DNA of 64,000 nucleotides from Saccostrea cucullata (lineage: Eukaryota): assembly GCF_032062105.1 (NCBI RefSeq), contig NW_026920785.1, positions 1 through 64,000 of the forward strand. Reading direction: 5' to 3'. The position numbers were made by a program, and so were the translations under genes. Under the pieces are notes generated by a model, which was not told where the DNA came from, did not search any database, and saw only the letters and a program-made list of their open reading frames with translations. Below are positions 27,461 through 62,659 of this stretch, piece by piece; position 1 is the first letter of the stretch, and each line of letters starts with the position of its first letter.

Positions 27461-28162
27461 CATTGCAATATATGAGATATATCAGACCCCCAACCTTTAA
27501 CCACTGCCTTTAATTCTCTGAGGCTGAGTACGTTTCTTGTAAAAATATAAAACTGTTATTAAAGGAATTTTTTAGCCATGTAAAGATACCGAGTCTCTTT
27601 ATTTTTGCGCTTAGCCCTCTAACATTAAGTGAAATACACGATAACTCAAACGACATCAAAATTGAAAAATTCTACATGAACATTACCAACTGCAGTGCTA
27701 CGATTGTGTGACAAACTGATACAACGTGTTAATGAGCCAAAAATAACAAGAAAAGAAACAAAGAAAAGAAAATGAAAATATTTACAAAAGATAACGAAAA
27801 ACATACCTTTGAAGGGTGAGCTAGAAGACCGAAAAAAGCTTTGTCTTCCATTCGTAGTCAAAGTCGGAAGTTTACTTCCATGTCATAAAAGACAGAGTTT
27901 TAATCTAATGGCTTAACATTATCCGGAAAAAAGATTCCGGTTAGTTTCGCGAAAAAAGCGCAATTATTTACATACATTAGAAAGCGCTTAATACAAGATA
28001 TTTACATTGTTTGTGAACAAAAAAGTGTGAATAACACAATGTAGCATTATAATCTATGTACATTAAATCGAAAATAGCTATGGTTAAATATGTTTATGTG
28101 ATCTCCTTTTTTGTTATAACTGTTTATGAATATCTATCAAATTTACAAACACCCTAAAATTT

Positions 28163-29453
28163 CTACCAGGTCCACTTGGATAAGGTCTTGTTTATTTCCT
28201 GTTCAAGAATCCCGTCGCTAAGCCTCAGTATAACCTACAAAAAGTAAGCAGAAAAAGATTTCAATCTTTATGAGATAGATGTTCACATAAAAATCATGAG
28301 GATCAAATTGTGATGAAACATTTACTTGAGACAAATCCAACCATTTGAGTCTGAACACATGACTATTCATTGTATTATTTGTCTGATGTGCAAGAAAATT
28401 TCGATGCTTGCGTAGTCTCTCAACATCGTCAGTTTTTGTTATATCTTCATCTTTCGGATCTTTCCCCCATCCAGACATAGGTGGCTGTACATCAGTGTAG
28501 TTTCTCAAGATTTTGTACATTATAGTTTCATCAAAGCTTTCCGATGAAACATTTTTCGTGCCTGCAATGATTAAATGTCCCTTACATCATTTTCATGTTT
28601 TACGCAAACAAATACAACATATATATGTATAAAATAAGTTGTAAATTCCCTTGACATAGGTGAAAAAGGATAATTTGTCATTTTTTTTCGTTATAAACGT
28701 ATGTCCCGCACGTGAAACAGAGTGCTTAGGTATTAATTTGTAAAATGACGTTCCATATAACCCATGAAAAGGAATATTTCTTTCGACGGGGGTTGTTCTA
28801 AATATATGTCATGTTCTCTATTGATTTCTAATGTGAAAAATATGTTTTACTAATAATATGAAATTATCTCTCTTTGTTTTGTAATAGATGTTAAATAAGT
28901 GTAAGAAATCATTAAAAAATGTTTACTATAAGGATAAACCCTATTTTACATTTTTGAAATATACGTTTCATTAAAATTAATGATATGCATTAAATGTCAT
29001 TCAATGTCTTTATAGAAAATAATTCTAAAATATAAATTTCAGAGAAATTTAAATAGTATTCAAAATCCTTAGAGAAAACTATTCTGAAGTACTTAGTATA
29101 AATTGCAGGGAAGTAGCAGTCTAAAATTGAAAAGTTATATTTACAATAGCATGTATTAAAATTAGATTGAGTTATAAGTATGTTTTTAGCATCCGTTATT
29201 GAAGTCAAAGGTACTGAAATCTCTTAAAAATCCTTAGAAAAAAAATTACCTGGACTGGGAAAAATTATCTGCAATTGTTTGTCGTTGAATCTATATGGAC
29301 CACTTTTCATCGAAGATTGATTTTTTGCTGTAATAGTTCCCAGTTCTGATGGAGGAACAATTTTGTTGAAGAAAATTCTTAAAGCCTGTATCCCTAGCAT
29401 TCTCAAGGAAGAATAGCGACTAAAATTGTCTTTTTCTTCTCCATGTGTTATTT
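28163..29453 (-). CDS. DZIP3-like HEPN domain (last three exons of the ROCO gene)
   Basis: EEKDNFSRY..LRMLGIQALRIFFNKIVPP..L...QLQIIFP | VSSESFDETIMYKILRNY...PPMSGWGKDP......DDVERLRKHRNFLAH...MNSHVFRLKWLDLSQ | VILRL. RNFLAH (28403-28386) fits the HEPN R-x4-H motif. Confidence 0.88.
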
Positions 29454-32400
29454 CTGCGAAGTAGACGAATTGAAATCTCAATAAAACTTTTATCAAGAAG
29501 ATATTATGTTCTTATTTCAAGCAGATCAATTACTCAAATAATATATTCTATTGCATAATGAAAATTTAAAAGTTGATTTTCAAAATAAATAGGGACTATT
29601 CCTTATTCAAACCCTCTGCATTTTAAAATAAAAACGTGCGTCGCCAAATGTGTAGGCTGTTACATGAATTTTATGGATGAGTCAAAAGTGTTCATACGTA
29701 AATGAAAATGTCTACATACAATAACATTTAGGTACCTTTATAGAAAAAAATGTATGTTGCATTGTGAATTTATTTATTAAGTGTTATTTTATGTCGCATT
29801 TGAGAATGTTGCATTCTTATAGAAACGTCACCAAAAACCGGGTGAACCATTACATTGCTCTTACGACCATTGAAAAAAGAGGGATAATTATCGCAACAAT
29901 GTCAACCTTGAAACGGGACCGCTGTCTGAATGTCCCATAAAAAATATATTCACTTGAAGATGCCAAGTGTGTGGCAAAGGAAGTTTCATACACAAAAGAC
30001 AGTCAAAACGCGGAGCAAGCGCTATACTAACTGAGCTTTGGTGACAGTAAAAAAAATTGAAATTATAAAATAAAGTACTTTAGCTAAGCGTAAGAAATTT
30101 TGTAATTATATTATTGTTTTAAAATTAAATATATTATACGATAACATGCTTATGTAATTTCTATTATTCACAGCTTTATTATATTAATTTATATAACCTC
30201 CTAACTTCCTTTTCTCTAGAATGAATTTTTGCCATTCAATTTATTTTTCTGAGTAGCATTTATGATAAATTTTATTAAATGTGCTAATTTATATTTAATT
30301 AATGATTTGAAGGAGACCAGATTATTTTTCTTTTTCCTGAAGTAAAAAAAAAATCCAATATTATTTTTCGTCTGTTAAAATACCAATGGAAAATACAGAA
30401 ATTTGTATGATCCAGTTTGAGGTTTCAATGTATGTAAAAATGGTGTCTTACATTCTGAAACCAGAAAGAGAAAATGAAATTATTCACTATTAAGGGTTTG
30501 TCTTACCTAAACTTAAAGGAGAATTTTGTCTATTATTGCTCCAGTTCTACAAAAAGGAAAGAAAAATAACATTAAAAAGTTAATACATATAGATTGTACT
30601 TAAGCCTATAAGCTAGAAACCTTTAAATTAAACGTTTTCCTTTAAAAGTGTATGTAAGAAATAATTTTGCTAAAGTATTTACAGTCAATGCGGAAGAAAA
30701 GAAGAATTAAAAAAATAATTTAAAAAAAAAAATAAAAAAAAATAAAGAAGGATATGTTAATATAGATATATGGAGAACATTTAAATTGCTTCATCTGTTT
30801 ACACAATTTTCTTCAAGGAAAAAAAATATCACAAACATGAATGTTTATGAAGACTCATGAGCTTTATGTTTAGTTCTGTTCTCATTTTATGACTAAATCC
30901 CCCCCTAAAAAAAATAAATATTCAAAGCAATTGGAAAATACCATTTCTCCGAAAAAAGGCAACTGTGCTTATGTCTTTTTTTTTAAAGCGTAAATATAGT
31001 ATTTTATAGTGTATTGATTATAGATATAAACCGATAATGAAGGGACACATTCCTTACCTCTGTCCAGTAAGACAGAATGTCCTCCTTATTGATGACTGTG
31101 TAATACTTTTGATGGTTTGGACACGGTATTATCTTCTTCGTAGTCCTCATCAGCTTGTCTTCAGAAATAAAACTATCTTCGTCCTCGTCTGTTATTTTAA
31201 CAGATGAACAAGGGCAATGGAAGCCTATTTCGTACTGTGATTTTTTATGAAATGTTGACGTTATTTCATGCATTTGTTTTTCAACCTGATTTCTGATTTT
31301 TGCGATCATTTCCACTTTTAATGGAATTGTAGTGGCTCGGGTATACACCTGTAACTGAATTGATGTTTTATTAACAGCAATAATAACATGGTGATAGATA
31401 TCATCTTCGCCAGCTTTAAAAATAGCAGCATTTTTCATCAAGGAATCATCACCAATGGGTCTCCAAATTCCAAACAGTGTCACAATGAGGCGGTAAAAGA
31501 AGAAGTGTGGTAAAAACGTTTTAAAATGAAATGTTAAAATTGAAGTATGGTTTCCCTTTTCAATGAAATCTCTTCTCATAAAATCAATTTTGTTGATACT
31601 TGGAATATAGTAGTGTGGTTCCCTTTTCTGTTCAGACAATTCCATCCTCGCCAATATACCAAGTTTTTCCATGTATGGTATAATTTTGTCTTTCGATATT
31701 GTATAGTTTTTCCTCCCATCAAGTTTCCATATGTCAAGCAAAAGAGATTCTGGCAGAATGCCACTTCTATTAAAATTTTGCCATCGAGGTTTAAGTGCAT
31801 GTTTGTGGCATTTGTTTGGGACATGCGTTTCGTCTGTTATGATGTGTTTGAAGGAATCAACAAACCATTGAATATCAACAATGATGGTGTTCCTTAAATG
31901 CTCATCGGGGAAAAATAGTATGATTCCTATTTCGTGATAAAACCTTAACATATCATCAAAATCATCATCCGTTACATAGAATGCCTTCATTTCATCCCGA
32001 GATAAAATTTTTAGTTCCCTCTTTTCACGTATAATCTTTTCAAATTGTAGTCAGGTAGCGGGTACCTTCTCACCCCAGGATGGGAGATTTATGACTGATT
32101 CCGCAATACCTTGTCTGACCTCTTCAATGGCTTGTAATTGTTTCTTTGTCTTTCTCTTTGGGGGAAGTTCTAGTTCATAGTACCAGTGCGATTCATCATT
32201 TAATAGATTGTGTAATGTTGTCGGTACTCCTCTCGTAAGTTGTTTGTAAAAATCATCTCCATCTTCAATTGAGTCGCTCTCAGATACATCCTGAAAAATA
32301 ATAAATGAAGGAAAACAAGATGAAGATTTATTACCATTTCACACACAATTTTAGATTGACTTTAGGATACAATAGATCTATAAATATATAAAATTGTAAA

Positions 32401-35400
32401 TATACCAGTAAATGCAGAAAAATTGAAAGAAAGGTTCATAAGGTTTACATAATTTTAAAAAAAATAAACAAATTACTTTGACTTCTTCGACATAAATTCA
32501 TTCAAAGAATTGAACATTTTTTTTTTATTTTACACAAGATTTGAGAAAAAAGGATATGTACAAATGTTCATTTGATATACGTGTCGCCTTGTCGTGCCAG
32601 GAAACATTAATCTATCCTTTGACAAAATGCATTCTTTCCTTTCTTATTTTCATTGGAAGAAGAAAACATAAAAAAAATCTTTTTTATTGAAGGTCGTATT
32701 TTTAATAAAGTGCAAACAAACCGTCTTGCGATCTTTATGTGTGGCTATTACAATCACAGGAGAAGTAACATTCTGTCCAGAATAATCTTCACTATATGTT
32801 CGAATCGTTTGTAACCAAAAGGTGAAATAATCTGGAATGACAGCATAGGCTTTGATATCGACCTCTCTCATATAAAAACATTTTTGATAAATGCATGTAT
32901 ACGTATATAATATTTATAGATGTAGCTTTTTTCTACAAGTAACTGAATGACGCATTTTAATGGTATTTACTCATTTCTGAAGTATCCATTAAGGATAAAA
33001 AATATACTAACCCTGCGAACTCCAATGTTCAAAAAGGGAGCCTTTGACATTCTGTCTGTCAGAGCTTCCAATTTCAGCATATAGATCTTTTGACATGTCT
33101 ACAACCAGCAGATAAATCGCTCTGCGGGAGAAATATACCTGATGACAAGCATAATACGCCACTTGTCCTGCAAAATCCATAACACTGAGACAGTTTGATT
33201 TTTGTGATTTTTTTCTTCTCTGTGTTCTGGAGAATAGCATATTTGAGGTTGTTTGCGTTTTATAATCTGAAAAAAAAAAAACAAAAACAAAATTCAATAT
33301 TTTCATCTCTCATATGACTAACCATTGTTTCATTGTTTCTTTTTTCGTTTTTTCTTAAAATATTTTTATTGAAACTAATTTTATGCAGTCTTAAGGTCAA
33401 GATATAGTAAATGACAGTTTTTAATATTTCTTTCAAACTTTAAAAAAAAATGAGACTTAAAAAAAAATATTTGTATAGATTAAAAATAAAAATAAACAGA
33501 AACTGATTTCCTTCTCTCATTAATTTGTTTGTCAATGATCTATATCTATTTGGAAATTGTATAAAAGTAGAATATAATTGCTTGATTGATTGTATACTGT
33601 TTAATGTCCCTCTCCAGAATATTTCACTGACATGGAGACGTCACCATTGCCGGTGAAGGGCTGCAAATCCAGGCCTTTGCTCGGCACTAACGGCCTTTGA
33701 GCATGTGGGGATCTTTATTGTGCCACACCTGTTGTGACACGGGTCCTCGGTTTATACGGTCTCATCCGAAGGACCGTCCCATTTAGTCGCATTTTACGAC
33801 AAGCAAGGGGGTACTGAGGACCTATTCTTACCAGGATCACCACGGGGCAAGTTTCTCTACGGGGCAAGTAGAATATGCTCTTGCGTAAGTAGATTATGCT
33901 CTTGCGTATTGAATCAACTGAGAGATATGAACCCAACATATATCAAATGATGTTAACGATTAAGATTATATAGATGGATACCCAGGACAATTTTCCAAGC
34001 ATTAGAAAAAAAAACACACCATAAAAGGCTGTTTTCATCATGTATCAAGTTCAATTTGAAGTGTATTTAATTTTTTTTTTTTGAAATCTTAATTCTTATC
34101 TTCTTCGTCAGATTATCATATATGTTACTTTACATGGTCATCCCATACACAATCGATCTGTATGATTTGATTAGTTTTTTCACTGTATTCATAATGATTT
34201 ATAGATATTATGGCAAAATATATGGATAATTCAAAAAAGGGTCTCATCATGAATATGAAAAGCGTATAAACATAGTTCAACTTGATCAAAGATAAAAGTA
34301 ACAAACTAACAAACAGACTCATTGTTTCATGCAATTTACAACTCTTTTACACTGAAAGAGATTCTGGACGAAGAGGTACATGTAACCTAAACTTATTTGT
34401 CAATATCCTTCAATTAAAATTTAGTGAAGTTAATTAGACCATGCTTTTGAATCTGAAAACATCAGACAAGAATTAATCCTAAATCCATTTAGGAATACAG
34501 GAACTAATACGTGTGGAATATGTAAAATTCCTAATAAATACTATATCCGTGAAATTTGTTAATATTGTGGAAATATAAAGACATTTAAATGATGAAATTT
34601 AATGATGAAACACAAAAAAAGATTATTCATAAATTGGATTTTTTACTTTCATTGTTCATATTTGTTGCAAATGTGCTTTCTGTTCGTATTACTCGGTTAT
34701 TTTCTGATGATGACGAAAAGATTTTTTTTTATTTTACCATACAAGGTCTTATTTCTATTCTTTTCCGAAGATATGACAAAAAGATCCTCGTAAACGTCAA
34801 GCCCCGTTGTTGACTCTGGGGGTTCCCTTGACTTATTCTTCCTCTTTCTCTGGAGATTATGAAGAAGTGTTGTTTTTCCTGCTCCCGCGCAACCTACAAT
34901 AAAACATCTGCCTCTAAACACTTGATCAAAACCACGTTTAAAACTTTCCAGAAATCTCTTCCTTGCTCCGAAGTCCCATTTGAGAATTTCCTCCGGAACT
35001 TGATCTGAAATATGTAAATAAGATTAATACCTAACAATTGACATTACTTATATGGTTGAAATAAGAATATAAGAATAATAATTTTTGCAAAATTGAAAGA
35101 GATTGGGTTCGAAAAATGGAATGAAATTGATATTAACCTCTGGAAAGAAAACCGTAAGTACAGCTTCTTAGAGCAGAATTTAGTCATATCATATTTGTGG
35201 GGACAAGCAGTTCATTCTGCTCAAATACATATGGATAATACATTGTACTCATCCTTGATCATTGTTAGTGATCAAATTGTCCTTCATTTTTCAGATTAAC
35301 ACAACCTTATCCAAAACACTACAATTCTATACTTTTCGGACTAACAAACAATCCGATGTGCTCAAATCTATGTAAAATCTCTTGACCAACTTTCCATTTG

Positions 35401-38400
35401 CTAATTTTTTTTCGCGATTTGAGGTTGCAAAGACCATTTACAATAACAGGTACTCGTGAAAATCAAGGAACCGATAATATTGTAGGTATCTATGATGAAT
35501 AGGTATGCGCCATACTAAATAACAAATTGTATGTATCAGTGGGGTGTCACGTGACTTGAATAAACAGATATTCGATAGACTTGCTGTAGGAAATAGGCTA
35601 GTGCACTGACATACATATGTCCTTATGAAAAATTGTACCTAATGATTTAAAAGTGTTAACATCGTCTTCACTAAAAATGCTAAGGGTTAAATATTGCTGT
35701 CTTGGAAGTGCATGTAATCCTGTTAAAATGAGTTCAGTAGAAAAAATTCCTGTATATGCTTAATACTTTCAATTAATAAAAATTATGTAATACAGACCAG
35801 AATCAACTCACAAGATTTCTTATAATATTCATTGTTAACTTCCTTCCTTACTTTATGCAGCAATACACATGTAACTTTGTCTACTGCATAATGGGTTTAT
35901 ATAGATCTCAATTAATTCGATGCTCAAGAACATGCTCTACATACGAACTTTTTTTTTAACTTGGTATGTTAAAGACAAACAAGTTGCTAAAACAAAATAT
36001 CAACAGTCTCGTTTAGAATCATCATTTCGTGTGTTTAATGGTCGATACAGTGAACTTGTCAGCAAATTCGACTAACGTCATATGCTGACTGACGTTTTTC
36101 ATAAGTATAGTATATCAACTGTTACAACGCGAAATGTAATAAAACGCGAAATGTAATAAACCTGAATTATTACATTTTGTGTTATTACATTTTGCGTCGA
36201 GATCAACGCAAAATGTTATAACGCAAAATGTAATAACACGATTTTTGAATTATTACATTTTGCGTTGTTACATTTTGCGTCGAGATTAAGCAAATGGCAG
36301 GAACGCAAAATGTAATAACACACTTTTTTCATCAGCCAGATTGAGTACAATTTTCAATAGTGTAGTGGCCGATGAAAAGACCGATTTATTGATTGTATAT
36401 TGTTTAACGTCCCTGTAGAGAATTTTTCACACATATGAAGACGTCGCCACTTGCCGGCGGAGAGCTGCAAATTTTGTCTTATACTCGGCACTAAGGGCCA
36501 TTAAGCAGGGAGGGATCTTTTTCGTGTCAGCACCTACTGCCACACGGGACCTCGGTTTATACGGTCTCATTTTAATTAAGACCGGTCTCCACGTCCCACA
36601 GTGGGATTCGAACCCGCGACGTAACTCCTTACTTCGCGACTCTAGACCGATGAAAAGAAAATAAAACAATAGGAAAAAAATTCTATCTCTCTCTTTCTTT
36701 CCATCCTATATTAAATTGATTGTTTCTGCATGTCCACAGTAATACGAAGTAAATACCCCACCTTACCCCTGCCCCTCCTTGCTTAACACATACACATACA
36801 CTTCTAATACACTTACACTTCTAATTTGTTGACCAATGTATACACGCCGAACATGCATATCAAAAGCTTTTAATGAACCTATCGTTAATTTTTTAAAAAT
36901 TGAAAATGTTTTGTTAGACATTTAACAAGAATATCAAAAATATGCCAATCAAAGTTCAATTAATTCTGTATAATTAAGTACAGTGTATTCATTATACTAA
37001 AATCAGAGTCAGAAAAACGATGCATTAAGATGTATTGATGTCCGTAGAAGACCTAACTTTAGTGTCATTGTTTTAGTTCTAAATATTTTACAGCGTGTTT
37101 CTAATTTTGGTAACATGTGTATGTTTGAATATATTTTATCACCGTTTTTGTTAAACGCAATAAAAAAAATTATTATATTTTGTTTTAGGGTGAATTCACC
37201 ATGCATCGGATACCCTTGTACTTCAACAAGTTCTAGCGATATCGCTACCGACGGAAAATTATCAAAATGGAGTTTAACATTTAGTTTGTGATTAAAATAA
37301 CAATTTAGGACACAATTATATGCCGTTTATTGAGAAAATATCCCCGAAAATCGAGTTTTTAGAAAAAACTGAAAATTCACCATGGATCGGACATTGTTCA
37401 CCATGCATCGGACAGACGGTATGGAGACTGGAAAAATATCATACCTTTATCACAGTGCTTTAAAATCCTTGATATGGATATATTTTCATCTTTCATCTAA
37501 GAAATAACCCTCAACTTTAATTTAATCGACGATATTATTGCACAAATGTAGAATGATTCTCTAGACCTCACTCTGCCTAAGAAATGCTTTAAAATGCTTA
37601 TAATGCCGTAATTCGCGCCTTTTTCTCATGGTTTATCATACTCTGGTTTGTAGAAATAAATTGAGTAAAATTCCAGACGTCATATATCGATAACTTGTAT
37701 TTTGACTGAAAATATAGAGTTTTTATTTTCTTTTTCCGCAAAAAACAGCTGTCAGCTGGGTTCTGTATGAAAATGGTAGTGCTTACCTTTGCATCGAAAA
37801 GTGTCCGATGCATGGTTAATTTGTGTCCGATGTACGGTGAAAATAGCATACTGGTAAAAACCAGCTCTAATAAGAATTAAACAAACAATGAAGTGAAATT
37901 TAATTATAATTTATGTAAAATTACCAATCCCTGACAAAATTCACCAAAGTCCGACTCGTTCCGTGGAAGTCGAATTTAAAAGAACGATAACTCTAAAAAT
38001 TGCAAAATCATAAATTTCGGGTTATTCCCCTTAGATGATGTAAAAATGTGACGTAACTTCAAGGCCATTTGTGGGGTATTTTTATCACAACATGATAAAC
38101 GCAATCGGTATCATTAAAAAGTTTAAATCTTCGTCTTTATGACAGAAACAAATAAATACACAGAACTCTTAAGTTGAAAGAGAGTTTATTGCCTAAAGTT
38201 GTCCGAAGCAAGGTATGTGTCCGATGCATGGTGAACTCACCCTATTACATATTGTTTTATTACATTTTGCGTTGTCTTCAGTGCAAAAATAAAAGAACGC
38301 AAAATGTAACAACGAAAAATCACGTTATTACATTTTTCTTTGATCTCGACGCAAAATGTAATAACGCAAAATGTAATAATCTAAAAATTGTGTTATTACA

Positions 38401-39903
38401 TTTTGCGTTATTACATTTTGCGTCGAGATCAACGCAAAATGTAATAACGCAAAATGTAATAATCCAGGTTTATTACATTTCGCGTTGTTATTACATTTCG
38501 CGTTGTAACAATCGACCATAAAGTAACACACTGAATTATCAACATATCTACTAATATTTCCCAATCATGACAAGGAACATACGGCAGGTGTGACCGGTGG
38601 GCAGGAGATGCTCACTTCTCAATTTTTTACTATCCCACCTTTGAAGTTTTTGAGGTTCATGTTTGCTCTGCTCCTATTTTGTACATTTAAGGACTTCTGA
38701 GCTTGATATATAATAATAATGTCTTTATACCTTGACAAGCTCCAGAACTATACTGAAAGGAAAAAGAAACGCAGGGTAAACTTTTGAGGTGTATTTATTT
38801 TATTTTTCCTTTATTTTCTTTTTCGGTATTCTTTTCTAACTTTCAAAAAGATATATCCAAAATCCCATTTGATTTTGTTTAATAATTAATGAGTTATTAA
38901 TTAATGAAGCTCATATGCCGATACCCCCAAAAGTGAAAATCGAAAACTCCCAATATCTTTAATTTCTCTCCTGCGCATCTGTCACGAGCCTTATTTCTCC
39001 TTTTCGTGGAATTTATCAAAGTGTTTATCTTTCTATCCCTTGCTATATTGTGCATGGGTGACCACGCCAAAAAAACTAGTCATACTACGCGCGCATGCGC
39101 CAATGAGAGGAACGCAATATTAAGTGGACCGGCTCAAAAAAATCAAATTGCGGAATTTTTCCCTTTAATATCTCGTTTGAAGGTAATAATTATGATAGTG
39201 TATTATATGAAAGGCGGTTTCGGCGGTAGTAAGGTAGCGATGTTACAACGCAAAATGTAATAACAACGCGAAATGTAATAAACCTGTGTTATTACATTTT
39301 GCGTTATTACATTTTGCGTCGAAATCAACGCAGAATGTAACAACGCAAAATGTAACAACACATTTTGGAGAATTATTACATTTCGCGTTATTACATTTTG
39401 CGTCGAGATCAACGCAGAATGTAATAACGCACAATGTAATAACACAATTTTTGGATTATAACATTTTGCGTTGTTACATTTTGCGTCGAGATTAACCAAA
39501 AGACAGGAACGCAAAATGTAATAACACATTTTTTCGTTGGACAGATTTTCAATAGTGTAGTAGCTGATGAAAAGAAAATAAAACAAAAGATTTAATTAGA
39601 TCAATTTCTTACAATTAATATTTTTTTAGTATATTGATTAAATTAGTTACATGTATTCCCAATCAGTTTAATAAATGCATTCATATTAGATATGTGTTGC
39701 AAATTTGAAACGTGCATCTGTGGGTAGGTTGTTTGGGTATTGAGCTGTGTGTTTTTGCCTTTTTATAGACAATTGCAATGAATTAAAAAAAAATATTCAT
39801 TTGTACTAGCAGGCGTTCATGTTTAGCGGGAAGGGGATTATTGACAATAATGATACCATACTGTTCCTTGCAAATCTCCAGCATTACAGACAAGCAAAAT
39901 CAA

Positions 39904-39938
<35 letters not shown>

Positions 39939-53228: not shown

Positions 53229-56200
53229 CATTTTGTCCGTCGTCCGTCTGTCCGTCTGTAAACTTTTCACATTTTAGACTTCTTCTTCAAGAACCACTGG
53301 GCCAATTTTGACCAAACTTGGTACAAAGCATCCTTGGGTGAAGAGAAATTTAAATTGTTAAAATAAATGGCCAAGTCCCCTCACAAGGGGAGATAATCAA
53401 GAAAAGACAAAAATAGGGTGGGGTCATTAAAAAATCTTCTTCTCAAGAACCACTGGGCCAGAAAAGCTGAAACTTATGTGGAAGCATCCTGGTATAGTGT
53501 AGATTCTAAATTGTACAAATCATGACCCCCGGGGAAGGGCGGGGCCACAATGGGGAATCAAAGTTTTACATAGAAGTATATGGGAAAAATCTTTGAAAAT
53601 CTGCTTCTCAAGAACCACTGGGCCAAAAAAGCTGACACTTATGTGGAAGCATCCTGGTATAGTGTAGATTCTAAATTATTCAAATCATGACCCCCGGGGG
53701 AAGGGCGGGGCCACAATGGGGAATCAAAGTTTAAGAAGGAATATATAGGAAAAATATTTAAAATTGTGTCTAAATTATGATCAGTGGGGTAGGGTGGGGA
53801 TGCATTATGTATTACAAGGGGGAAATCTGGTAAAGAACAGAATGGTCAAAGTTTCTCAGGTGAGCGATGTTGCCCATGGACCTCTTGTTTAACAATATTG
53901 ACCTCTTCACATTATCATAGCTAAATTTGCAAAATAAATCAAAATTGTTAATAAATTCTACATCTTTTTTTAATATAGATCAAGATATTTACTTTATTTT
54001 ATTTTCATCATGTTACAGATCCCATGGAAATATAGGATCCTTGGCTAATCATGTGTCATCTGCAGTGTTACAAAAGAATATTGGATTTATATCAATAAGG
54101 TAATTAGGGACAAAACTGAATTTAAAAAATGGAATAAGATGTAAAAAGAAAAGTATTTTAATTCCACATTTAATAGTTAGGTTGCTAGTTGTATATTCAT
54201 TGATGTGTCACTGACAGGTACATGTAGTTTTTTATTTCCACAAAAACTTGATCCTTTGGTATTAACTCTTGAACAGTTTGTGCTGAGTCTTTGTATTTCA
54301 CAATTACAGTGGACCTTCAGATATCCGGACGCCAGATATCCGTATGCTTCAGTATCCGGACGCTTTTTCATCAGAACAGAATTTTGAAATGCTATTATCA
54401 TTTGAATATGTCTTATCTAACAGCTGATTCAGGTATCCGGACGCATCACATATCCGGACAAATTGACTGGGAACCAAAGCGTCCGGATAAATGAGGCTCC
54501 ACTGTATTTCTTTTCCTTTAACCCCATGGTCTTGGCCTTAGAGTGTGGCCTACATTTAGAAACTAAAATATTTGATCTTTATCCTTATATACCAGTTTGT
54601 TTAATTAAGACAATTCATTAATCCAAATAATTTCCTTGGGAGCAAAAGTGCCCAGATTAATGAGGCTGACTTTATATGCATTTAATTTAAAAAATGCATG
54701 ACATTATATAAAAAAGGTATCTCAAAAGTGTTTTATATTCATATAGACACAGTCATACTATGTTTGCAGTGTAAGAAAGAAGTAAAACATGTATTTTCAT
54801 TCTTATTGTATTGAAATATTTTGTTCTTTTCAGAAAAAGAACTACCAGAAGGAGACGTTAAAGAGGAACGGACATATCACACCATAAGACGTGCTTCAAA
54901 ATCTGAATATACGGAGTGAATTTTGCTTACTGCAGATCCTTGTGAAAGAACACCTTTGTTGTATTGACATAAAAACAACGGAATTGTCAGGATCCTTGAA
55001 CATGACGCAACTGGCTGCATACGATGGCAATTAAAAATGCAAACATGTTTACATTGATCTTTGTTAACCAATAAGACAAAAAGCAAAATAGCAAGTTTAT
55101 CCTATTACCGTACATGTTCTGAATGTATTCACTTTATTTTGTTAAACTACATCATGAGTTTAAAAATTGTACAGTATCACATACAGTTTATGGTGGGATT
55201 CCTCTAACTTTTATGAATCTGTTTGCAAAATATTTACTTTAAAGTTACAAATTATTACCTCTAATGCATTGTATGGTTTTTTTGGTAAATTATTAAACTA
55301 CTTTTGTATATATGTAATAGTGTTGGCAATGAGTACCCGGTTAACCGGTTAACCGTCGAACGATGCGAGTATCGGTTAGTAAAACTGCTATTCGGTTACT
55401 CGGATAAAACACATTTTTCATAGTAAATACGAATTAAATAATTTTGAAGTTATTTGTAAATGTATATATTGACACATTTCCCTAATTTAATTACCATTAG
55501 GCTTGCTCTAGAATCGATTTGTTTTGATTAGTTAATTGATGACTTTAATTGCCAGGGGGTACACGTTTTGGAGACCTGAGTTATAATTACCTCTTTTAGA
55601 CCCGTGTTAGTCAGAGGAACACACTTTAGCTAGATGCCAATATAAACATCTAAAGTATGAAAATATTGTTAAAGAACGACTGACTCGAAATCTGTCAGAT
55701 GCAATTTATGTAAATCAGAGTTGTCGTATAAGGTTGGAACTACAAATATGCTAAATCAACTAAGATTGAAAAGTAATTCGATAACCATTGACTTGCATGA
55801 AACTCAACAAAAAAAAAACAGTAATTGCATTTTGTGTTAAAGTGTATGTTAATTCTCCTCGATCACGACATATATCTTCTTCATGTGTTAATAAAATTAT
55901 TTTTTAAACAAAAACAAATTCCCCATTTCAAGTGACATTTAAAATCTTTGAAGATATTGTGTTTTTGGAGTTTGTATTTTGTAAATAAAGTAACATTTAT
56001 TATTTATTATTATCAATATGTAAAAGGATGAGATTGATAAAAAATACGGAAACTATAACAAAAAATCATCCGAGTAACCGGGTACTCGATCGGAAGATTA
56101 AGCGAGTAACTGGTTAATGAAAATCGTCCGATTTGCCAACACTAATATGTAATGATAACCAAATCACCCAATTTTTCCGCACTTTTTACCATATATTTAG

Positions 56201-59200
56201 CATTTGTTTTAACCATGCTTTAGTATATTAATATCTGACAACTGATGACCAGGCAGTCTTCATTTAACAGTGCTATTGTAATACATAACACATTTTTATC
56301 TGAATATTTTTAAAACAAGGATAACATGCCATGGATTTATTCTGCATACAAAACTTCATAATCACTGGGTTTTCTTATTCATTTTGTAAATGTATTTGGA
56401 ATAAAAAAGGAATTGTTAAAAGAAAAGTGAAATTAATCATTCTTTTGTTGTCAAAGGAAGATAATAAAACCTGTTTACTTATGCACAGAATTGGTCAAAA
56501 CATATTGTCATTGATAATTCATCCAAGAATCATATGTATAATAGATCTACAAAGTCAATTTGAAGGATATCAAGGAAAGTTCTTTTTTTTTAATATAAGT
56601 GCAAAAAGGTCAAGCAGGGCAACATGTGTCCGGGTGTACATGTATAAATTGTTTTCTGTGATATAGAATGTAATTTAGAAGAATATTACTTGGAATTTTA
56701 CTCATTTTCTTTGAAGTATTTTGATTAATTCCATCTATCAAAGTCAATTTGAACGATATAAGGAAAACTTCTTATCTTTTTTAATATAAGTGCAAAAAGG
56801 TCAACCAGGGCAACATGTGTCTAGGTGTACATGTATAAATTGTTTTTGTGATACAAAATATTATTTAGAAGAATATTACAAAGAATTTACTAATTTTCTG
56901 TGAAATATTTTGATAAATTCTTGATAATCTCTCTTAGTCACCATTTTCTTCAAAATTGCATCCTTCTAAAGGAAGGGGGTAGGGTAGGGTGTAAGATAAT
57001 AAACTTGTTCCAGGTTGAATTTAAACCCCATTATGTAGTATGATTTTTTTCTGAAATTTAAGACACTTATAGGCTAACTATAATATGCAATAAAAAAAGA
57101 AATTTGATGGGTAATTTTTTCACAGTGGAAGCAGAAGTGTGAGACTGTGTGCAATGAATAGGCAATATTTTAACCTAATTTGACCATGCATGTTGGTAAA
57201 TTTATTTCTGTTTTTTGCTTACAATGCTTGATAAATTTAAGATTGATGTCAAATATTAATCCATACACACAGATGTTTGAATTCATATAAGACAAATGAT
57301 AATTGATATAGCAATAAAAAATTTACAGCCCTTTTCATATCATATTCTTATATTATTTTACCATGCTTTTTCAGCTCTTTGGTGGTTGATGAAGGCTATA
57401 TTAAAATTGTCAAATTTCTCTAAAACTAGCCCGATGACCTGCCTTGAATTTTTGATATGATTTAGAACAAGGACTCAACACAAACATATAAAAAATTCAG
57501 AAAAATTCAATGGGCAGTTTTTTTGTTGACCAGCTATCAATCTCTACCTTAAGGACTCTCGTAGGTAAATCAGCCTATGCACAGTTTCGGGAAATCGATT
57601 ATGACGTCACGATTAAACTGTACAAATCATTTACTTTCTTTTTCATACATTCTCACCTACAGTCATTCCTCAAAAATATTGTTAACATTAAACAATGTGT
57701 AATGTATCTTATATATTTTTGAATGTAGAATTAAAGCCACCTTGACACACAGTTTCTCTAAACTTAAGACGTAGATCAAGCAATTATTGAAACTAGTAAA
57801 TATGAAAATTAAATTTAAGATTTCCGATCAATAATAGACTCAGAATGAATTTTAATGCATAACAGATATATATTGGCCGAATATTAAGAAAATGTAGTAT
57901 TAATATGTCATATGAAATGTGGCAGACACTCCATACATACATGTATAATAGTAGATTTTCTATTAAATCAAAACTCGTGTAAACAAAAGAAATATCAACA
58001 TTATATTGATTTTATCGAAATATTCTGCTGACGTAGTATTTACGTATTTATTCACATAGTATTTTTGTTTAAGGGGTTTATTAAATTTCCCAATATAAAA
58101 ATCAAAAATACAATGTAACACGAGTAAACTGATTTAAAACTTTCAAAGTATTGCATTTAAAACTCCAAGAAGATTCTTGTATTTCCTTATTTTCTGACGA
58201 AATTCGTGATATATATTTTTTATAATAAAAATATGTGTAAGGTTTTCTTATTAATCAATTATTGATATACTAAACAGGAAAATTATATCCTTGTCAATTT
58301 CCTCTTTTCACTGAATATTTTAATTACATGTAACGCCTAACTTACAATTGATTTCTGTTTGCATTTTTTTTACGTATTTTCTATATTGAATTTACGTACG
58401 CGTTGTGGGGTGTCTGGTACATAAGTTAGGGGATATAAAACATTTTTTTTTTTAAATTTTATATTTATTTATTAACATACCGACATGTCCTTTTTGTTTA
58501 TTTTTCCGAAGGCATTGGGAGAAAAAATGACGAATGTTCTGCCTCAAATCAGGCCAACGTAGCCAAATAATATATATTGCTATTACAATCGATCCAGCAG
58601 CTATTGCAGTCAAACCTCCCACCACTAGTTGAATAGTAGTACTTGAATTATCGTTGGTAGGTCTAAATTCAGTGATATTTCCTGAGTTTTTTGTCATGCT
58701 AGAAGAAAAAAATAATAAGATCAACAACACAGTCAATAAATTAAAACTCCATTTTACATTGTAACTGGAATAAATTCTCTCGCTAAAATTGCTTAGATTC
58801 ATATCTTTCCAATGCTTATAAACAGTATCACTTTGTCAAAAATAACCTCTTGTAAAACAACTACTCTGAAATTGATGTTAATAAGAAGCTAAAGTTCCTC
58901 TTTAAGAACGTGTACGTAAATGTTGAGGCTAGAACGTACATTAACTTACTCTTCTCGTTAAACACCATACAATTTATTTATTTTTTTGTAATGTATTTAT
59001 TATCATCATGTTTATATGCCGTACTTTGACCACATGATAGTATGAAACCATAATTTGAACTTTGGGAATCCTCTCCTCTTCCTATTGATATACAATATAG
59101 GGTGACCGTTGGCCTTCCTATTTATATACACTCCTTATATATGTATAGTTAAGGTGAACACTAGTCTTCCTATTCATGTACAATATTAGGTAACCTCTGA

Positions 59201-62200
59201 CCTCCTTTTTGATGTACAATGTAAGGTGACCAATGATCTCCGTATTGGTGTACAATATTAGAAGACTACTGGCCTACCTATTGATGTAAAATATAAGGTA
59301 ACCTCTGGTCCCTTTAATGATGTGCAATATAAGGCGACCTCTGATCTTCTCTTGCATATTTCATTCCTTTTAGCCTTCAATGCCTGAAGAGTTCATATAA
59401 TACTATACACTGTATTTCTAATCAAAATGAGTATTTGTGGGTTACCCGAGGTCCCAATTTAGAGTTTGAAAGGAAACAGGAGGAACCTCTCTTGCGTCAC
59501 AAGTACCGTCTTTATCTATATATTTCTTTCATCAATTTTATAATTTTTTTCAAATATCCATGCCTTAAAAGGGATTTGGTTTCCTTATCATGTCATAATT
59601 TATCAAAAAGTAGAAAACAATCCTGTATAGATGTACCTTTGATTCACTAAAGGACACTGAGGATCGTCTATGAAGCATCCTAACTGCTTGTTAATGTTGA
59701 GGCATCTCTGGACTTAAATACATAAATTAGACAGTTAAATCCATGTATAAAAATCAAACTATATTATGACAATTGAAAATAAACAATTTCTTTTTAGTAA
59801 TTCATATTATTTAATATGGATGCAAACGCAATTTCTCCTTCATCGTATATCTGAAAAATAAATCTGAAAGGGAAAGTGATTAAATAATAATAAATTTATT
59901 GCTTTTTATAGGCAAAAACATTCAATGCACACAGACATTAATGTTTTTTCTCATATTTCCGATTTGTAACACGATTAGAATTGGGAAAATAAGGCAGAAT
60001 TTGCACAGAAACTTGCACAAAATTTCACCTGCGCATGAAAAATAAATTAATATTATTTTTTGTTATTTTGTTTGAATATGAACACACCAGTAGTTTTGTT
60101 AAAAGTTTTTTTTTTTTGTGATAGTTATATCAAACCATATAATCAGAGTTTTCAAAATCAAGTCAGTCACTGTAATATCGAGTATAATTTTAAACGAGAC
60201 TGCTGATATTCTTGTTTCATCAACTTGGTTGTCAATAATTCACTGAAGGTACCGGTATTTACTTAAATCTCTTTCTTCTTTGGGATTCAACATTCCAAGA
60301 AAGACCTTTCTAACAAATTACTGCATAATATTTTACGGTTAAAGTGATCATGTAGGAGCATACCTATACACAATATTTACTCGATATTATATTGTGGGGG
60401 GGGGGGGGGGGCTTTAACATTAAATAATGTTTGTCATCTCCATACCCTTCATTGTACTTTAGAAAGATCACAATCTGATAAGATAGTGAAATATAATACT
60501 CACAGAGGAAAATGTTGTTACTTAGGTAAGGCCGATAAGGACAGCCATCATTAAAGCTTTTACAACTGTCTTCATTTACTGTTCCGGAATCCGTAAGATG
60601 TAAACAATGACCTATAAATATTTAAAGAACAGTACCCATGTGTATTTCATGTATATTTTGTTACATTTGTAATATAATTTTTATAAATATTTCTAGTGTC
60701 ATTGTATGAAGACAGGGATAATTATAAAACAAAAAGACTAAGGAATTTTACGGGTTTTTTTTTTTATCAGAGGGAAGAATCGTGTCATTTGAAATGTAGA
60801 GTGCACAATTTATATTAGACTTTTTGAAAAAAATGGAATTTGCCATTGTAAATATATGGGTGGCCGTATGATTGGGGGGGGGGGGGGGGTTATCATTTAG
60901 TGAGATCATTTCTTGTATTACCTCTAATTAAACTAAACTACACGGTACATCCAATAGGAAGAATAGAAATATACTATAGGCTGTCTGGATTGGTAAACTC
61001 CATAAAGATACTATTTAGTGTAAAAAATTCAAAATATAAAGTGTGCGCATTAATTTGTATAAATTGTTCAATGGTTATCCATAACAAATAAACCTCCCCT
61101 ATGAAAAGAATGCTCTTTAGAAAGTATCACAGACTGAATCTAAAAAAAATAAAAAGCGACGATTGTTTGTACTGGAAAAAGTACATAATACAGGAGCAAT
61201 GTGATCAGAATACATCACAAAATTAAAAAACATTGGTTCAACTAAGCAAAAAATATAAATTTGCTTTCATATGTATCACGTTCTTTAATCAACTGAGACA
61301 ATTGAAAAGAAGAAAACGTTATATATACCTCCCCCCCCCCCCCCGAAAAAAAGACATACCCTTTTCATGCAGACGAATAAAATAATCATAGCAAAATTCG
61401 AGTAGAGCAGTTTTGGCTTGGTTTGGGATACACATGTATTGGAATCTGTTGTTTTTGTCGTAAGTGCAGTTTAATTGTACACCAGCTTCATACCAGGACT
61501 GATTTGTTGTGGGACAGGAGTTAACCTCATTCACCGGGAATCGGTACTGAAATAAGAATTATGCAACTACAGAAATTTAAGTGTTTCTGCAAGTCAACTC
61601 CTAGATGGGATTTGCATTTAGATAAAGGAAAATTACAAGGAGTTCTTTGGTAACAAATTTCCATAATCTTGGGGGCAAAATCTTTAAAATAAATCAAGTT
61701 AAGAAAATGGAGGATAAGGCGGACGAAACACCTATAGTTCGACAAACATGAACTGAAAAACTATAACTCAAATATATAAAAAAAAAATGCTTTGATATTT
61801 AATTTTAGATTAACATTTATTTTTCATAATTTTAGAAATTGCAATAATGAAAACTTGATCATGTGTTGATCTAAGTACTAAATTCACAAACACAGAAAAA
61901 AGAATACGATTTCTTAATATCTGTAGCTAAAGGCAATCTGCACGCCTTGTTCAACCATCTCCTTTATGAGTTTGCCTAATAATTTTGTTTTATTATCGAA
62001 CGGATCTACATCTGGCGTTTTCAGAGTGTTACCGATCTCAACAATATGATATTCACTACACTATTACCAGGTAAAAACACATATTCATATCATATTGACG
62101 TTCACTGAGAATCTTCTGCCGTTAAACTTATAATATGATAATATTAGAAAGATTATTATTTTTCCACATTCATCTTAGAAATGCAATGTAATTTTCGATA

Positions 62201-62659
62201 TATACAAGGAATAAATTGGCTTGTTTCAAAAACATTTTTTTTTAAACTTAAATATGATATCAGATTTTAAGAAACAAAAGCACTTACTTGCTTTACAGGA
62301 TAACTCTTAACCAAGAGAAAGTAAAACATTAGGCATGAACCAGTGACCAGCACCTGCAAATACCTTATAGTTATTTCGAAACATTTTTTACTCCCATTCT
62401 TGTTATATAAATGAAAGAAAAAGTTAATATCAGCAAAATTATCTAAAGAAAAAAAGATAGATTTTTATTCCTAAATTTGATTGTTCCCTCTTTGAACAGA
62501 AAATTGTTTAACATTTTACAAGTGAAATATGTGTGAAAAATTTTGAAAGGTAAGTAAGCAAACATATAGACAATTTTACAATTTACATATTATGGTAACA
62601 TGCTGAATGCTTCAAATATTTTGCCCTACCTTGTGAAGAAGTAAAGCTGAGAAAGACAT
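28163..62659 (-). CDS. Predicted single-pass transmembrane ROCO protein: signal peptide - Cys-rich ectodomain - TM - Ig-like - Roc GTPase - COR - DZIP3-like HEPN (19 exons, 1463 codons, in-frame TGA at codon ~948)
   Basis: Exons 62659-62630, 62353-62288, 61546-61360, 60611-60504, 59712-59637, 58698-58481, 49437-49225, 49136-48885, 46666-46175, 43533-43285, 35719-35639, 35004-34738, 33266-33012, 32831-32722, 32290-31058, 30546-30507, 29453-29250, 28561-28326, 28234-28163. All GT-AG, phases chain, total 4389 nt. The first exon and the 58481-to-49437 join are the least certain parts. Confidence 0.7.
31058..35004 (-). CDS. Roc GTPase and COR domains of the ROCO gene
   Basis: P-loop GCAGAGKTT, switch I ESTTGLDV, G3 DFAGQ..YYACHQ, G4 IATHKD. 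Junction WGEKVPAT*LQFE. COR motifs MLRFYHEIGIILFF, DIQWFVDSFKHII, YYIPS and FLPHFFFYRLIV. Confidence 0.92.
33580..33850 (-). mobile_element. SINE copy
   Basis: (GATT)n tail and body homologous to 23829-24110. Confidence 0.7.
36381..36646 (-). mobile_element. SINE copy with 12-bp TSD
   Basis: TSD CCGATGAAAAGA (36369-36380, 36647-36658). B-box-like GGATTCGAACCC. Empty site visible in copy 2 near 39560-39575. Confidence 0.85.
37188..38242. mobile_element. Non-autonomous TIR element with TA TSD
   Basis: TIR GGGTGA(A/G)TTCACCATGCATCGGA and internal CACCATG(C/G)ATCGGAC repeats. Empty site GTTTTATTACATATTG in copy 2 (~40416-40431). Confidence 0.88.
39241..40672. mobile_element. Foldback-like TGT...ACA DNA element, copy 2
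   Basis: Same TIRs and internal sequence as copy 1. Perfect 6-bp TSD TAGCGA (39235-39240, 40673-40678). Confidence 0.9.
42625..43150 (-). mobile_element. Two tandem 3' remnants of the Penelope-like repeat
   Basis: GAGTGAG(T/C)ATCC...ACCGGTCACAC(T/C)CGCCGTGTG occurs twice, as the reverse complement of 36000-36110 plus 38515-38690. Confidence 0.55.
43604..44717. mobile_element. MITE with long inverted arms made of ~80-bp tandem repeats
   Basis: Termini TGCATTGTTGCA / TGCAACAATGCA with TA flanks. ACCACTATTGAAATA arrays are inverted at the two ends. Confidence 0.85.
44895..46162 (-). mobile_element. Helentron/HINE-like element with ~165-170-bp satellite units
   Basis: Termini AACAAGAGGCCCATGG...AGGTCACCTGAG and AGGTCACCTGAGTTTACTCGGGTGACCTAAA, a (GAC/GGAC)n microsatellite and tandem CCCCTGACCC..GGGCCAT units. 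Ends about 12 nt from a ROCO splice donor. Confidence 0.8.
46967..47085. repeat. Long near-perfect palindrome with GCCGAAGGC-type loop
   Basis: CCAGAATATTTGCCCC..GGTGACAGGAAAGCCCTGGAGTGTTA is mirrored by TAACACTCCAGGGCTTTCCTGTCACC..GGGGCAAATATTCTGG. Confidence 0.9.
49711..51727. mobile_element. Kolobok-like non-autonomous element A
   Basis: TTAA flanks (49707-49710, 51728-51731). Imperfect TIR GGAAAGGATTGCACGG / CCTTGCAATCGCGTCC. Confidence 0.65.
53183..53890 (+). mobile_element. Helentron/HINE-like element with ~165-bp satellite units
   Basis: 5' TTTTTAGCTAACCTGAGCCGAAGGCTCAAGTGAGC, (GTCC/GTCT)n, tandem CTTCTCAAGAACCACTGGGCCA units, 3' CTCAGGTGAGCGATGTTGCCCATGGACCTCTTGTT. Confidence 0.85.
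54307..54504. mobile_element. Tc1/mariner-type MITE
   Basis: CAGTGGA...ATCCGGAC / GTCCGGAT...TCCACTG TIRs with TA TSD. Confidence 0.85.
55318..56144. mobile_element. hAT-type MITE
   Basis: TIR TAGTGTTGGCAA / TTGCCAACACTA, perfect 8-bp TSD ATATGTAA (55310-55317, 56145-56152), subterminal ACCGG/TAACC motifs. Confidence 0.92.
56548..56915. repeat. Tandem duplication, 2 x ~190 bp
   Basis: CAAAGTCAATTTGAA...GTGCAAAAAGGTCAA.CAGGGCAACATGTGTC...GAAGAATATTAC occurs twice. Confidence 0.85.
58481..62353 (-). CDS. Signal peptide, 10-Cys extracellular domain and transmembrane helix (N-terminal exons)
   Basis: VLVTGSCLMFYFLLVKS|YP, then YRFPVNEVNSCP...W...LNC...YMCIPN...LLEFCY...KGHCL...C..F..GCP...Y...RCLNI...GCF....C, a Ser/Thr/Asn stalk, and TM LVVGGLTAIAAGSIVIAIYIIWL followed by basic residues. 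Exon phases chain 0-0-1-1-2-1. Confidence 0.85.
59075..59350. repeat. Degenerate ~39-bp minisatellite
   Basis: About 7 units of CCTATTGATGTACAATATAAGGTGACC-like sequence. Confidence 0.75.

Follow-up and report, generated by a model that had tools for sequence, protein, structure and literature searches.

COR-mediated dimerisation is an accepted regulatory principle of the ROCO GTPases (PMC6337361). HEPN ribonucleases (RNases) need two Rx4-6H motifs side by side, and in RNase L and Ire1, the latter a single-pass membrane protein, a sensor drives the dimerisation or oligomerisation which assembles this site (PMC3710099). Here we describe a gene of the oyster Saccostrea cucullata in which both principles may meet. 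It lies on the minus strand, from 62659 to 28163, of a stretch of 64,000 nucleotides (contig NW_026920785.1, positions 1 to 64,000; hereafter the window), and its exons encode a Cys-rich ectodomain, a transmembrane (TM) helix, an immunoglobulin (Ig)-like domain, a module preceding Roc (the pre-Roc module), Roc-COR and a HEPN domain of the DZIP3 type. With a probability of about 60%, we read it as one modular receptor gene of immune type, with a null reference allele.

As in LRRK2, DAPK1, MFHAS1 and the Roco proteins of Dictyostelium and Chlorobium, Roc is directly followed by COR, although those proteins are cytosolic, carry kinase, leucine-rich-repeat (LRR), ankyrin or death domains, and possess neither an ectodomain-TM anchor nor a HEPN effector. 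RNase L and Ire1 use a kinase or pseudokinase switch and a KEN-type HEPN domain, whereas the window gene has Roc-COR, no match to a kinase family in any exon by Pfam, and a HEPN domain of the DZIP3 rather than the KEN family; the likeness is one of analogy only.

Closer parallels come from molluscs. Kaur et al. (2021; PMC8195603) described by computation in Crassostrea an NCOA6-clade TRADD-N expansion, in which a constant Cys-rich extracellular domain, a TM segment and DED-TRADD-N are joined to variable cytosolic effectors, including HEPN RNases, Death-like domains, ankyrins and B-box; the NTPases named there are STAND and AIG. The window gene shares with these receptors an oyster lineage-specific expansion, a Cys-rich ectodomain with TM segment and variable cytosolic C-termini, but its core is Roc-COR and its exons gave no Pfam match to DED or TRADD-N, which is a weak negative. 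More than 200 DZIP3-type HEPN genes, many fused to NACHT and mostly with Rx4H, are known from the pearl oyster (Takeuchi et al., 2022; PMC9646362), and Toll-like receptors (TLRs) and MyD88s fused to Roc-COR from the Aplysia immunome (PMC9334734). The Aplysia TLR-ROCO proteins, likewise described computationally and with an LRR-TIR sensor, pair a receptor module with Roc-COR, and the Pinctada NACHT-HEPN_DZIP3 proteins pair an NTPase switch with a DZIP3 HEPN domain bearing Rx4H. Neither paper reports Roc-COR joined to HEPN, the DZIP3-family fusions listed in the 2013 HEPN survey include none to Roc-COR (PMC3710099), and our literature search found no paper on a Roc-COR-HEPN or an ectodomain-TM-ROCO class.

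Two kinds of annotated oyster proteins each share one half of the gene. The TM-type ROCOs P0153 (S. cucullata LOC134265676), P0003 (S. echinata XP_061190276.1) and P0151 (Ostrea edulis XP_048770043.2), all named 'uncharacterized protein', have a Cys-rich ectodomain (50-53% identity) or a short one, a TM helix, one or more cytosolic Ig-like domains, the pre-Roc module, Roc and COR-A/B; their COR is 41-51% identical to that of the window and falls in the same supported clade. Unlike the window gene, they stop a few residues after COR, and those in the same genome have no HEPN exons within 10 kilobases (kb) downstream. The ROCO-HEPN paralogues P0041 (LOC134261693), P0180 (LOC134255623), P0034, P0032 and P0015, among others, combine an Ig-like or other N-terminus, the pre-Roc module and Roc-COR with a HEPN_DZIP3 domain bearing Rx4H. 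They are approximately 47-51% identical to the window in HEPN and only 32-36% in COR, and their models, unlike the window gene, contain neither Cys-rich ectodomain nor TM helix. The statement of the initial annotation that no characterised protein has this whole architecture therefore holds among the proteins sampled, but TM-ROCO and ROCO-HEPN proteins, all uncharacterised, are already annotated in oysters. The parts are of known kinds. Proteins that pair ROCO with HEPN have been annotated but not described, and the four-part combination has so far been seen only at this locus. The observation is real and moderately interesting, and less singular than had first been thought.

The window region is AT-rich eukaryotic DNA in which every candidate coding piece lies on the minus strand. 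Splice sites were placed from the sequence itself and by tblastn of homologues, and the joined frame was counted by script. The resulting model of 16 exons (Table 1) comprises 3,990 nucleotides, a multiple of three, and 1,329 codons in a single frame; all acceptors are AG and all donors GT (30 canonical splice sites), and the translation contains exactly one internal stop ahead of the terminal TAG. Because a further exon of 201 nucleotides is likely, 16 is the minimum exon count, and 17 exons are probable. The frame needs fewer exons than the 19 originally proposed, and the start at 62659, the end at 28163 and the junctions at 58481/49437 and 31058 were rederived independently with the same result. 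Seven consecutive introns, from that after the TM exon (58698-58481) to that before the G4 exon (32831-32722), are in phase 1, so that the five consecutive exons from Ig to G3 are of phase 1-1. Phase symmetry of this kind, which is expected of shuffled domain exons, allows exons to be exchanged and accords with the mix-and-match architectures seen across the family.

The 3' half of the model is borne out by RNA. Contigs from four runs were mapped over one interval, 28101-34100, where those of X1 and X3, which come from different studies, lack the introns and show six joints, all bordered by GT..AG when read on the minus strand: 33012|32831, 32722|32289, 31060|30547, 30507|29453, 29249|28560 and 28325|28232. 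The joint 31060|30547 is found in both X1 and X3, and 30507|29453 in X3. The Roc G3 and G4 exons, the G5-COR exon, the linker exon of 40 nucleotides, both HEPN exons and the last exon are accordingly parts of one spliced RNA, and over 31058-28163, one of the two stretches for which the initial annotation had called for transcripts, spliced contigs confirm all joints, including that from COR to HEPN. A search of the assembly for a retrocopy found none (the next-best COR match is 49% identical), and the COR-HEPN fusion is therefore transcribed. The RNA contigs differ from the assembly by 1-5%. Of those listed, 11 synonymous and 9 non-synonymous differences fall in the COR and HEPN exons, none of them in RNFLAH; this synonymous excess is a weak sign of constraint. 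In the last exon, seven of the eight listed differences are non-synonymous, including stop changes.

Domain searches, which were run exon by exon or on single open frames rather than on the spliced protein, recover the Ig-like, Roc, COR and HEPN domains that had been recognised before. On the G3 exon, Roc scores 33.0 bits (cutoff 27), the G1 exon gives a P-loop/Roc match, and the motifs G1 (GCAGAGKT), G3 (DFAGQ) and G4 (THKD) are all intact. COR-A, at 34.8 bits, lies just under its cutoff of 35.3 (E 1.9e-8) and COR-B has E 1.1e-4, both in the 348-residue frame 31007-32050; these matches share exon and frame with the end of Roc, with the TGA between them, and homologues exceed the COR cutoff. 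HEPN_DZIP3 (PF18738) reaches 57.4 bits against a cutoff of 27 (E 1.8e-15) in the single exon frame 28221-28586, and its motif RNFLAH is an Rx4H with a polar residue after R. The Ig-like exon matches I-set at 29 bits against a cutoff of 23.7 (frame 49208-49438). Pfam found nothing in the other frames of the window that were tested, and a low-stringency tblastn search of the interval 58.5-49.4 kb for another Ig exon returned only noise.

The pre-Roc module has no Pfam match. Its part B is a conserved unit, 'YFRTxGY...C.C.P...H.T..D', directly before Roc, and a profile finds it before Roc in many family members. The modelled fold of the module from the O. edulis homologue (pLDDT 79.7, 27-row alignment) gave no significant match with Foldseek; with VIA, the best 50 matches (Z 5.4-6.8) are nearly all winged-helix domains, including those of ORC/Cdc6 and plant NLRs. 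With modest confidence, we take the module to consist of tandem winged-helix-like units. A DED/TRADD-N dyad was considered for it and rejected, with low confidence, on the missing Pfam match, the lack of a significant Foldseek match and VIA matches that at Z 6-6.8 are all winged-helix.

On the N-terminal side, the joined frame carries 10 Cys and five N-x-S/T sequons ahead of a single strong hydrophobic segment at approximately codons 160-182 (Kyte-Doolittle 19-mer score 2.23), which is followed by the basic stretch RWPDLRQNIRH. One TM helix, a positive-inside flank and a disulfide-rich, glycosylated-type N-terminal part predict a type I single-pass protein, and the topology is clear: the Cys-rich glycosylated part lies outside and everything from the Ig-like domain onward inside. 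In a search of the contigs of the genome the TM exon proved unique. The 10-Cys ectodomain and the TM helix noted earlier are hence upheld, but the signal peptide is weak, since its exon encodes ten residues, MSFSALLLHK, with a hydrophobic core of six, against leaders of approximately 20 residues in paralogues, and neither RNA nor homology supports it. An alternative signal-peptide exon was sought, and one hydrophobic candidate at contig positions 67377-67306, outside the window, was set aside, as nothing supports it. In the ESM Atlas, the ectodomain recovered just unnamed mollusc clusters, below 0.9.

The single internal stop, a TGA at codon 815, splits one frame into 32338-32054 and 32050-31007 ('...SWGEKVPAT*LQFEK'), at a site of the Roc/COR junction where homologues carry Trp ('IPVKWSIFEQ', 'IPVQWSIFEH', 'IPLNWIKLAD'); the initial annotation makes no mention of it. 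An X1 contig, with 11 differences from the assembly, runs uninterrupted over the site, and so splicing does not remove the TGA. The reference allele therefore stops after Roc, before COR and HEPN, and most probably is either a null or a young pseudogene allele, in a gene which is still transcribed and correctly spliced.

Sequence similarity places the gene in a ROCO expansion that is very large and specific to oysters. The genome (1.17 Gb in 23,869 contigs) holds at least 124 matches to the COR exon (624 candidates), at least 150 to the HEPN exon (761 candidates), at least 150 to the Cys-rich ectodomain exon (447 candidates) and at least 29 to the pre-Roc module exon (183 candidates). Pseudogenes are common in the family, as about a quarter of the paralogous COR exons contain stops. 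The order Cys exon, module A exon, COR exon is repeated on the same strand of contigs C6222, C2716, C13008, C18249 and C13714. Among the matches listed, COR is followed by HEPN within approximately 13 kb at no fewer than 13 other loci, and one other locus, on C21136, has Cys exon, COR and HEPN on one strand.

An exhaustive profile-free protein search with the COR exon yielded 636 protein clusters, and no match to the window above 51% identity was found in the protein searches. Ectodomain, TM helix, Ig, module and Roc-COR, ending after COR, are present in P0003 and P0153 and, with a short ectodomain, in P0151; P0062, P0065, P0068, P0079, P0080 and P0116 have ectodomain, TM helix and Roc-COR followed by ankyrin repeats or UBA. 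In all, TM-anchored ROCOs make up at least eight of the protein clusters annotated in oysters, and Roc-COR with HEPN and without TM helix at least 20, including P0015, P0032, P0034, P0041 and P0180; further variants carry Death, DED, B-box or an N-terminal HEPN. One COR-exon match, P0135 (1,347 residues), has an N-terminal HEPN_DZIP3, three Ig domains and a weak DED match ahead of Roc-COR, and thereby connects the HEPN-Ig-DED-TRADD-N architecture known from Crassostrea gigas with the ROCO expansion. In our reading, phase 1-1 exons shuffle N-terminal sensors and C-terminal effectors (HEPN, Death, DED, ankyrin, UBA) around the Roc-COR core. Local comparison and Pfam on the COR-exon relatives found no sampled protein with both ectodomain/TM and a C-terminal HEPN, and searches via the P0003 ectodomain and the P0041 HEPN returned 3 and 9 matches, none with both ends. 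In a FastTree phylogeny of COR regions, the window groups, with good support, with TM-type proteins whose chain stops after COR, and is the only HEPN-bearing member of this clade; HEPN-bearing clades are its immediate sisters, and HEPN has therefore been either kept only in the window gene or regained.

A single receptor gene is favoured at the 3' end by the presence of Roc-COR and a catalytically plausible DZIP3-type HEPN domain in one spliced transcript. At the 5' end, the link of ectodomain and TM helix to Roc is suggested by N-terminal exons that are colinear with the RefSeq models P0003 and P0153, which hold ectodomain, TM, Ig and Roc-COR in one protein, by matching exon phases and by the repeated synteny. 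Several observations weigh against this reading. The reference allele encodes at most ectodomain, TM, Ig, winged-helix module and Roc. Within the interval mapped, the RNA-supported joints begin at G3 and none falls on exons 1-9; introns of 9 kb and 8 kb lie between the TM exon and Roc; and the leader exon ranks 43rd of 170 candidate leader exons by hydrophobicity. Moreover, the Ig exon contains an in-frame Met at 49421 ('MNNVSFKHH...'), the position at which the P0041 RefSeq model starts ('MRNSISLEV...'), which may point to a cytosolic isoform without TM or to a truncated P0041 model; such an isoform is possible because the cytosolic Ig-winged-helix-Roc-COR-HEPN models P0041 and P0180 both begin at the Met equivalent to that in the Ig exon. 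Lastly, the 10 kb that follow each of the 20 closest COR paralogues in the same genome contain no HEPN exons, and the full combination may for this reason be a one-off fusion. The uncovered 5' junctions, the 9-kb intron and the early Met, together with a Cys-rich exon family that at 447 candidates is far larger than the accompanying ROCO set, would also suit two transcription units, namely a separate small membrane-protein gene or remnant at 62.6-58.5 kb and a cytosolic ROCO-HEPN gene that starts at or near the Ig exon, like P0041 and P0180. We consider this distinctly unlikely: phases match exactly over the ectodomain, TM and Ig exons, the TM exon reaches its GT donor with no in-frame stop ahead of it, P0151 as well as P0003 and P0153 unites TM and Roc-COR in RefSeq, the order of Cys exon, module A and COR is kept at five or more paralogous loci, and the window COR groups with TM-type proteins in the tree.

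A minor but real prospect is that the locus is a decaying chimera, in which HEPN exons were joined to a TM-type ROCO by a recent shuffling or fusion accident and the product was then inactivated by nonsense mutation, leaving residual transcripts and no functional receptor-GTPase-RNase. The TGA at a conserved Trp, the position as sole HEPN-bearing member of its COR clade, the 20 closest paralogues without HEPN, the weak leader exon, the stops in about a quarter of paralogous COR exons and the mostly non-synonymous differences of the last exon all agree with it. However, beyond the TGA the 1,329 codons are free of stops and frameshifts, every one of the 30 splice sites is canonical, runs from two studies show expression and splicing of the gene, the COR and HEPN exons have an excess of synonymous changes and an intact catalytic motif, and the sister position of the HEPN-bearing clades means that HEPN may be ancestral rather than accidental. 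Regulated readthrough, with UGA (UGA-CUA) partly read, most easily as Trp, to give a short ectodomain-TM-Roc and a long COR-HEPN form, is highly improbable. The stop takes the exact place of a Trp codon, differs from TGG by a single transition and has CTA after it, in a transcript otherwise intact and expressed; but no inspected paralogue has a stop at the codon-815 site, a single nonsense substitution is the simpler reading, and the site reads UGA-CUAC, not UGA-CUAG, the known strong readthrough motif of animals.

For the single receptor gene, the full-length product would be a single-pass type I membrane protein of approximately 1,330-1,400 residues encoded by at least 16 exons, with an N-glycosylated 10-Cys domain outside and the Ig-like domain, tandem winged-helix-like units, Roc, COR-A/B, a short linker and the DZIP3-type HEPN domain inside. 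Ligand binding or clustering of the ectodomain would alter the dimer or nucleotide state of Roc-COR, which in turn would bring two HEPN domains together into a composite RNase site, and this site could cleave viral RNA or that of the host as part of a cell-autonomous response, either defence or death. By analogy, such dimerisation-driven RNase assembly, similar to that of Ire1 and RNase L, is plausible. That alleles with Trp-815 (or UGA readthrough) indeed yield a membrane receptor in which a HEPN RNase is gated by the Roc-COR GTPase is a tentative proposal, which we hold to be rather doubtful.

If it were true, the protein would be the first metazoan surface-to-RNase immune sensor with a ROCO switch, and would provide a natural experimental entry to the role of the many oyster ROCO-HEPN proteins. 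ROCO GTPases have been studied almost wholly via cytosolic kinase-linked members such as LRRK2, and an RNase output with a TM input would widen the known reach of Roc-COR. DZIP3-type HEPN domains are hugely expanded in bivalves, none with a demonstrated activity or trigger. The locus and its better-preserved ROCO-HEPN and TM-ROCO paralogues offer expressed constructs for work on GTP- or dimerisation-gated RNases in invertebrate immunity, and illustrate phase 1-1 shuffling as a source of immune receptor diversity among genes at the edge of pseudogenisation.

Table 1. Exons and other features of the receptor gene in the window, in order of transcription.
Feature	Position	Strand	Basis
Exon 1, putative start and short leader MSFSALLLHK	62630..62659	-	ATG; donor AAG|GTAGGG; phase 0 into exon 2
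Exon 2, Cys-rich ectodomain part 1 (4 Cys)	61360..61546	-	tblastn 52-53% identity to P0003/P0153 N-termini; AG/GT
Exon 3, ectodomain part 2 (3 Cys)	60504..60611	-	tblastn 51-57% identity to P0003/P0153; phases fit
Exon 4, ectodomain part 3 (3 Cys)	59637..59712	-	weak tblastn match to P0153 122-139; pattern as in P0003 'YPRCQQ...C...C'; phases fit
Exon 5, N-glycosylated stalk (predicted), TM helix, basic cytosolic flank	58481..58698	-	hydropathy; AG/GT; phase 2 in, phase 1 out
Exon 6, cytosolic Ig-like (I-set)	49225..49437	-	Pfam I-set E 1.2e-6; phase 1-1
Probable extra linker exon, 201 nucleotides, phase 1-1, dispensable for the frame	48936..49136	-	AG/GT; 'EIETLDLYGP...' resembles P0041 'EIQKLKLVGE...' and P0003 'AVKLIGPN...'
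Exon 7, pre-Roc module part A (winged-helix-like)	46175..46666	-	colinear with P0003/P0151/P0005; at least 29 paralogous exons
Exon 8, pre-Roc module part B	43285..43533	-	tblastn 37-40% identity to P0003/P0153/P0151
Exon 9, Roc G1 P-loop GCAGAGKT (34893-34870) and switch I	34738..35004	-	Pfam Roc/P-loop; 45-58% identity to homologues
Exon 10, Roc G3 (DFAGQ)	33012..33266	-	Pfam Roc E 7.7e-8; 3' junction in RNA contig
Exon 11, Roc G4 (THKD)	32722..32831	-	both junctions in X1 RNA contigs, one also in X3
Exon 12, Roc end, COR-A and COR-B	31058..32290	-	Pfam; X1 contig continuous over 31060-32249
In-frame TGA replacing conserved Trp of 'P..W', codon 815	32051..32053	-	read directly; homologues W
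Exon 13, COR-HEPN linker exon of 40 nucleotides	30507..30546	-	RNA joints; AG/GT; phase 0 in, phase 1 out
Exon 14, linker and N-terminal HEPN helices	29250..29453	-	RNA joints; aligns to P0034 882-941 and P0015 1000-1063
Exon 15, HEPN_DZIP3 core with RNFLAH (28403-28386)	28326..28561	-	Pfam E 1.8e-15; RNA joints
Exon 16, last HEPN helix and stop TAG (28165-28163)	28163..28234	-	RNA contig X1; matches P0034 1024-1037

The introns of the gene gave no tRNA gene in an ARAGORN scan. In the intron between Roc G1 and G3, a short repeat at 33577-33930 is covered by RNA of all four runs to a depth of 180-1,600, whereas the exons reach 2-10, and many contig ends there are loose, such as '...GGGATTCGAACC'; it looks like a highly abundant, transcribed element of the short interspersed (SINE-like) kind, and its 'RPYKPR.RV' frame recurs in a related copy at 36430-36705. 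Just downstream of the 3' end of the gene, 128 consecutive N occupy 27117-27244. The long introns also hold satellite-like direct repeats (36137-40672, 43631-43879, 44437-44686, 45451-45943 and 53431-53760) with units of approximately 83, 148-165 and 165-168 nucleotides, some of which give spurious long open frames ('NVITQNVIT...').

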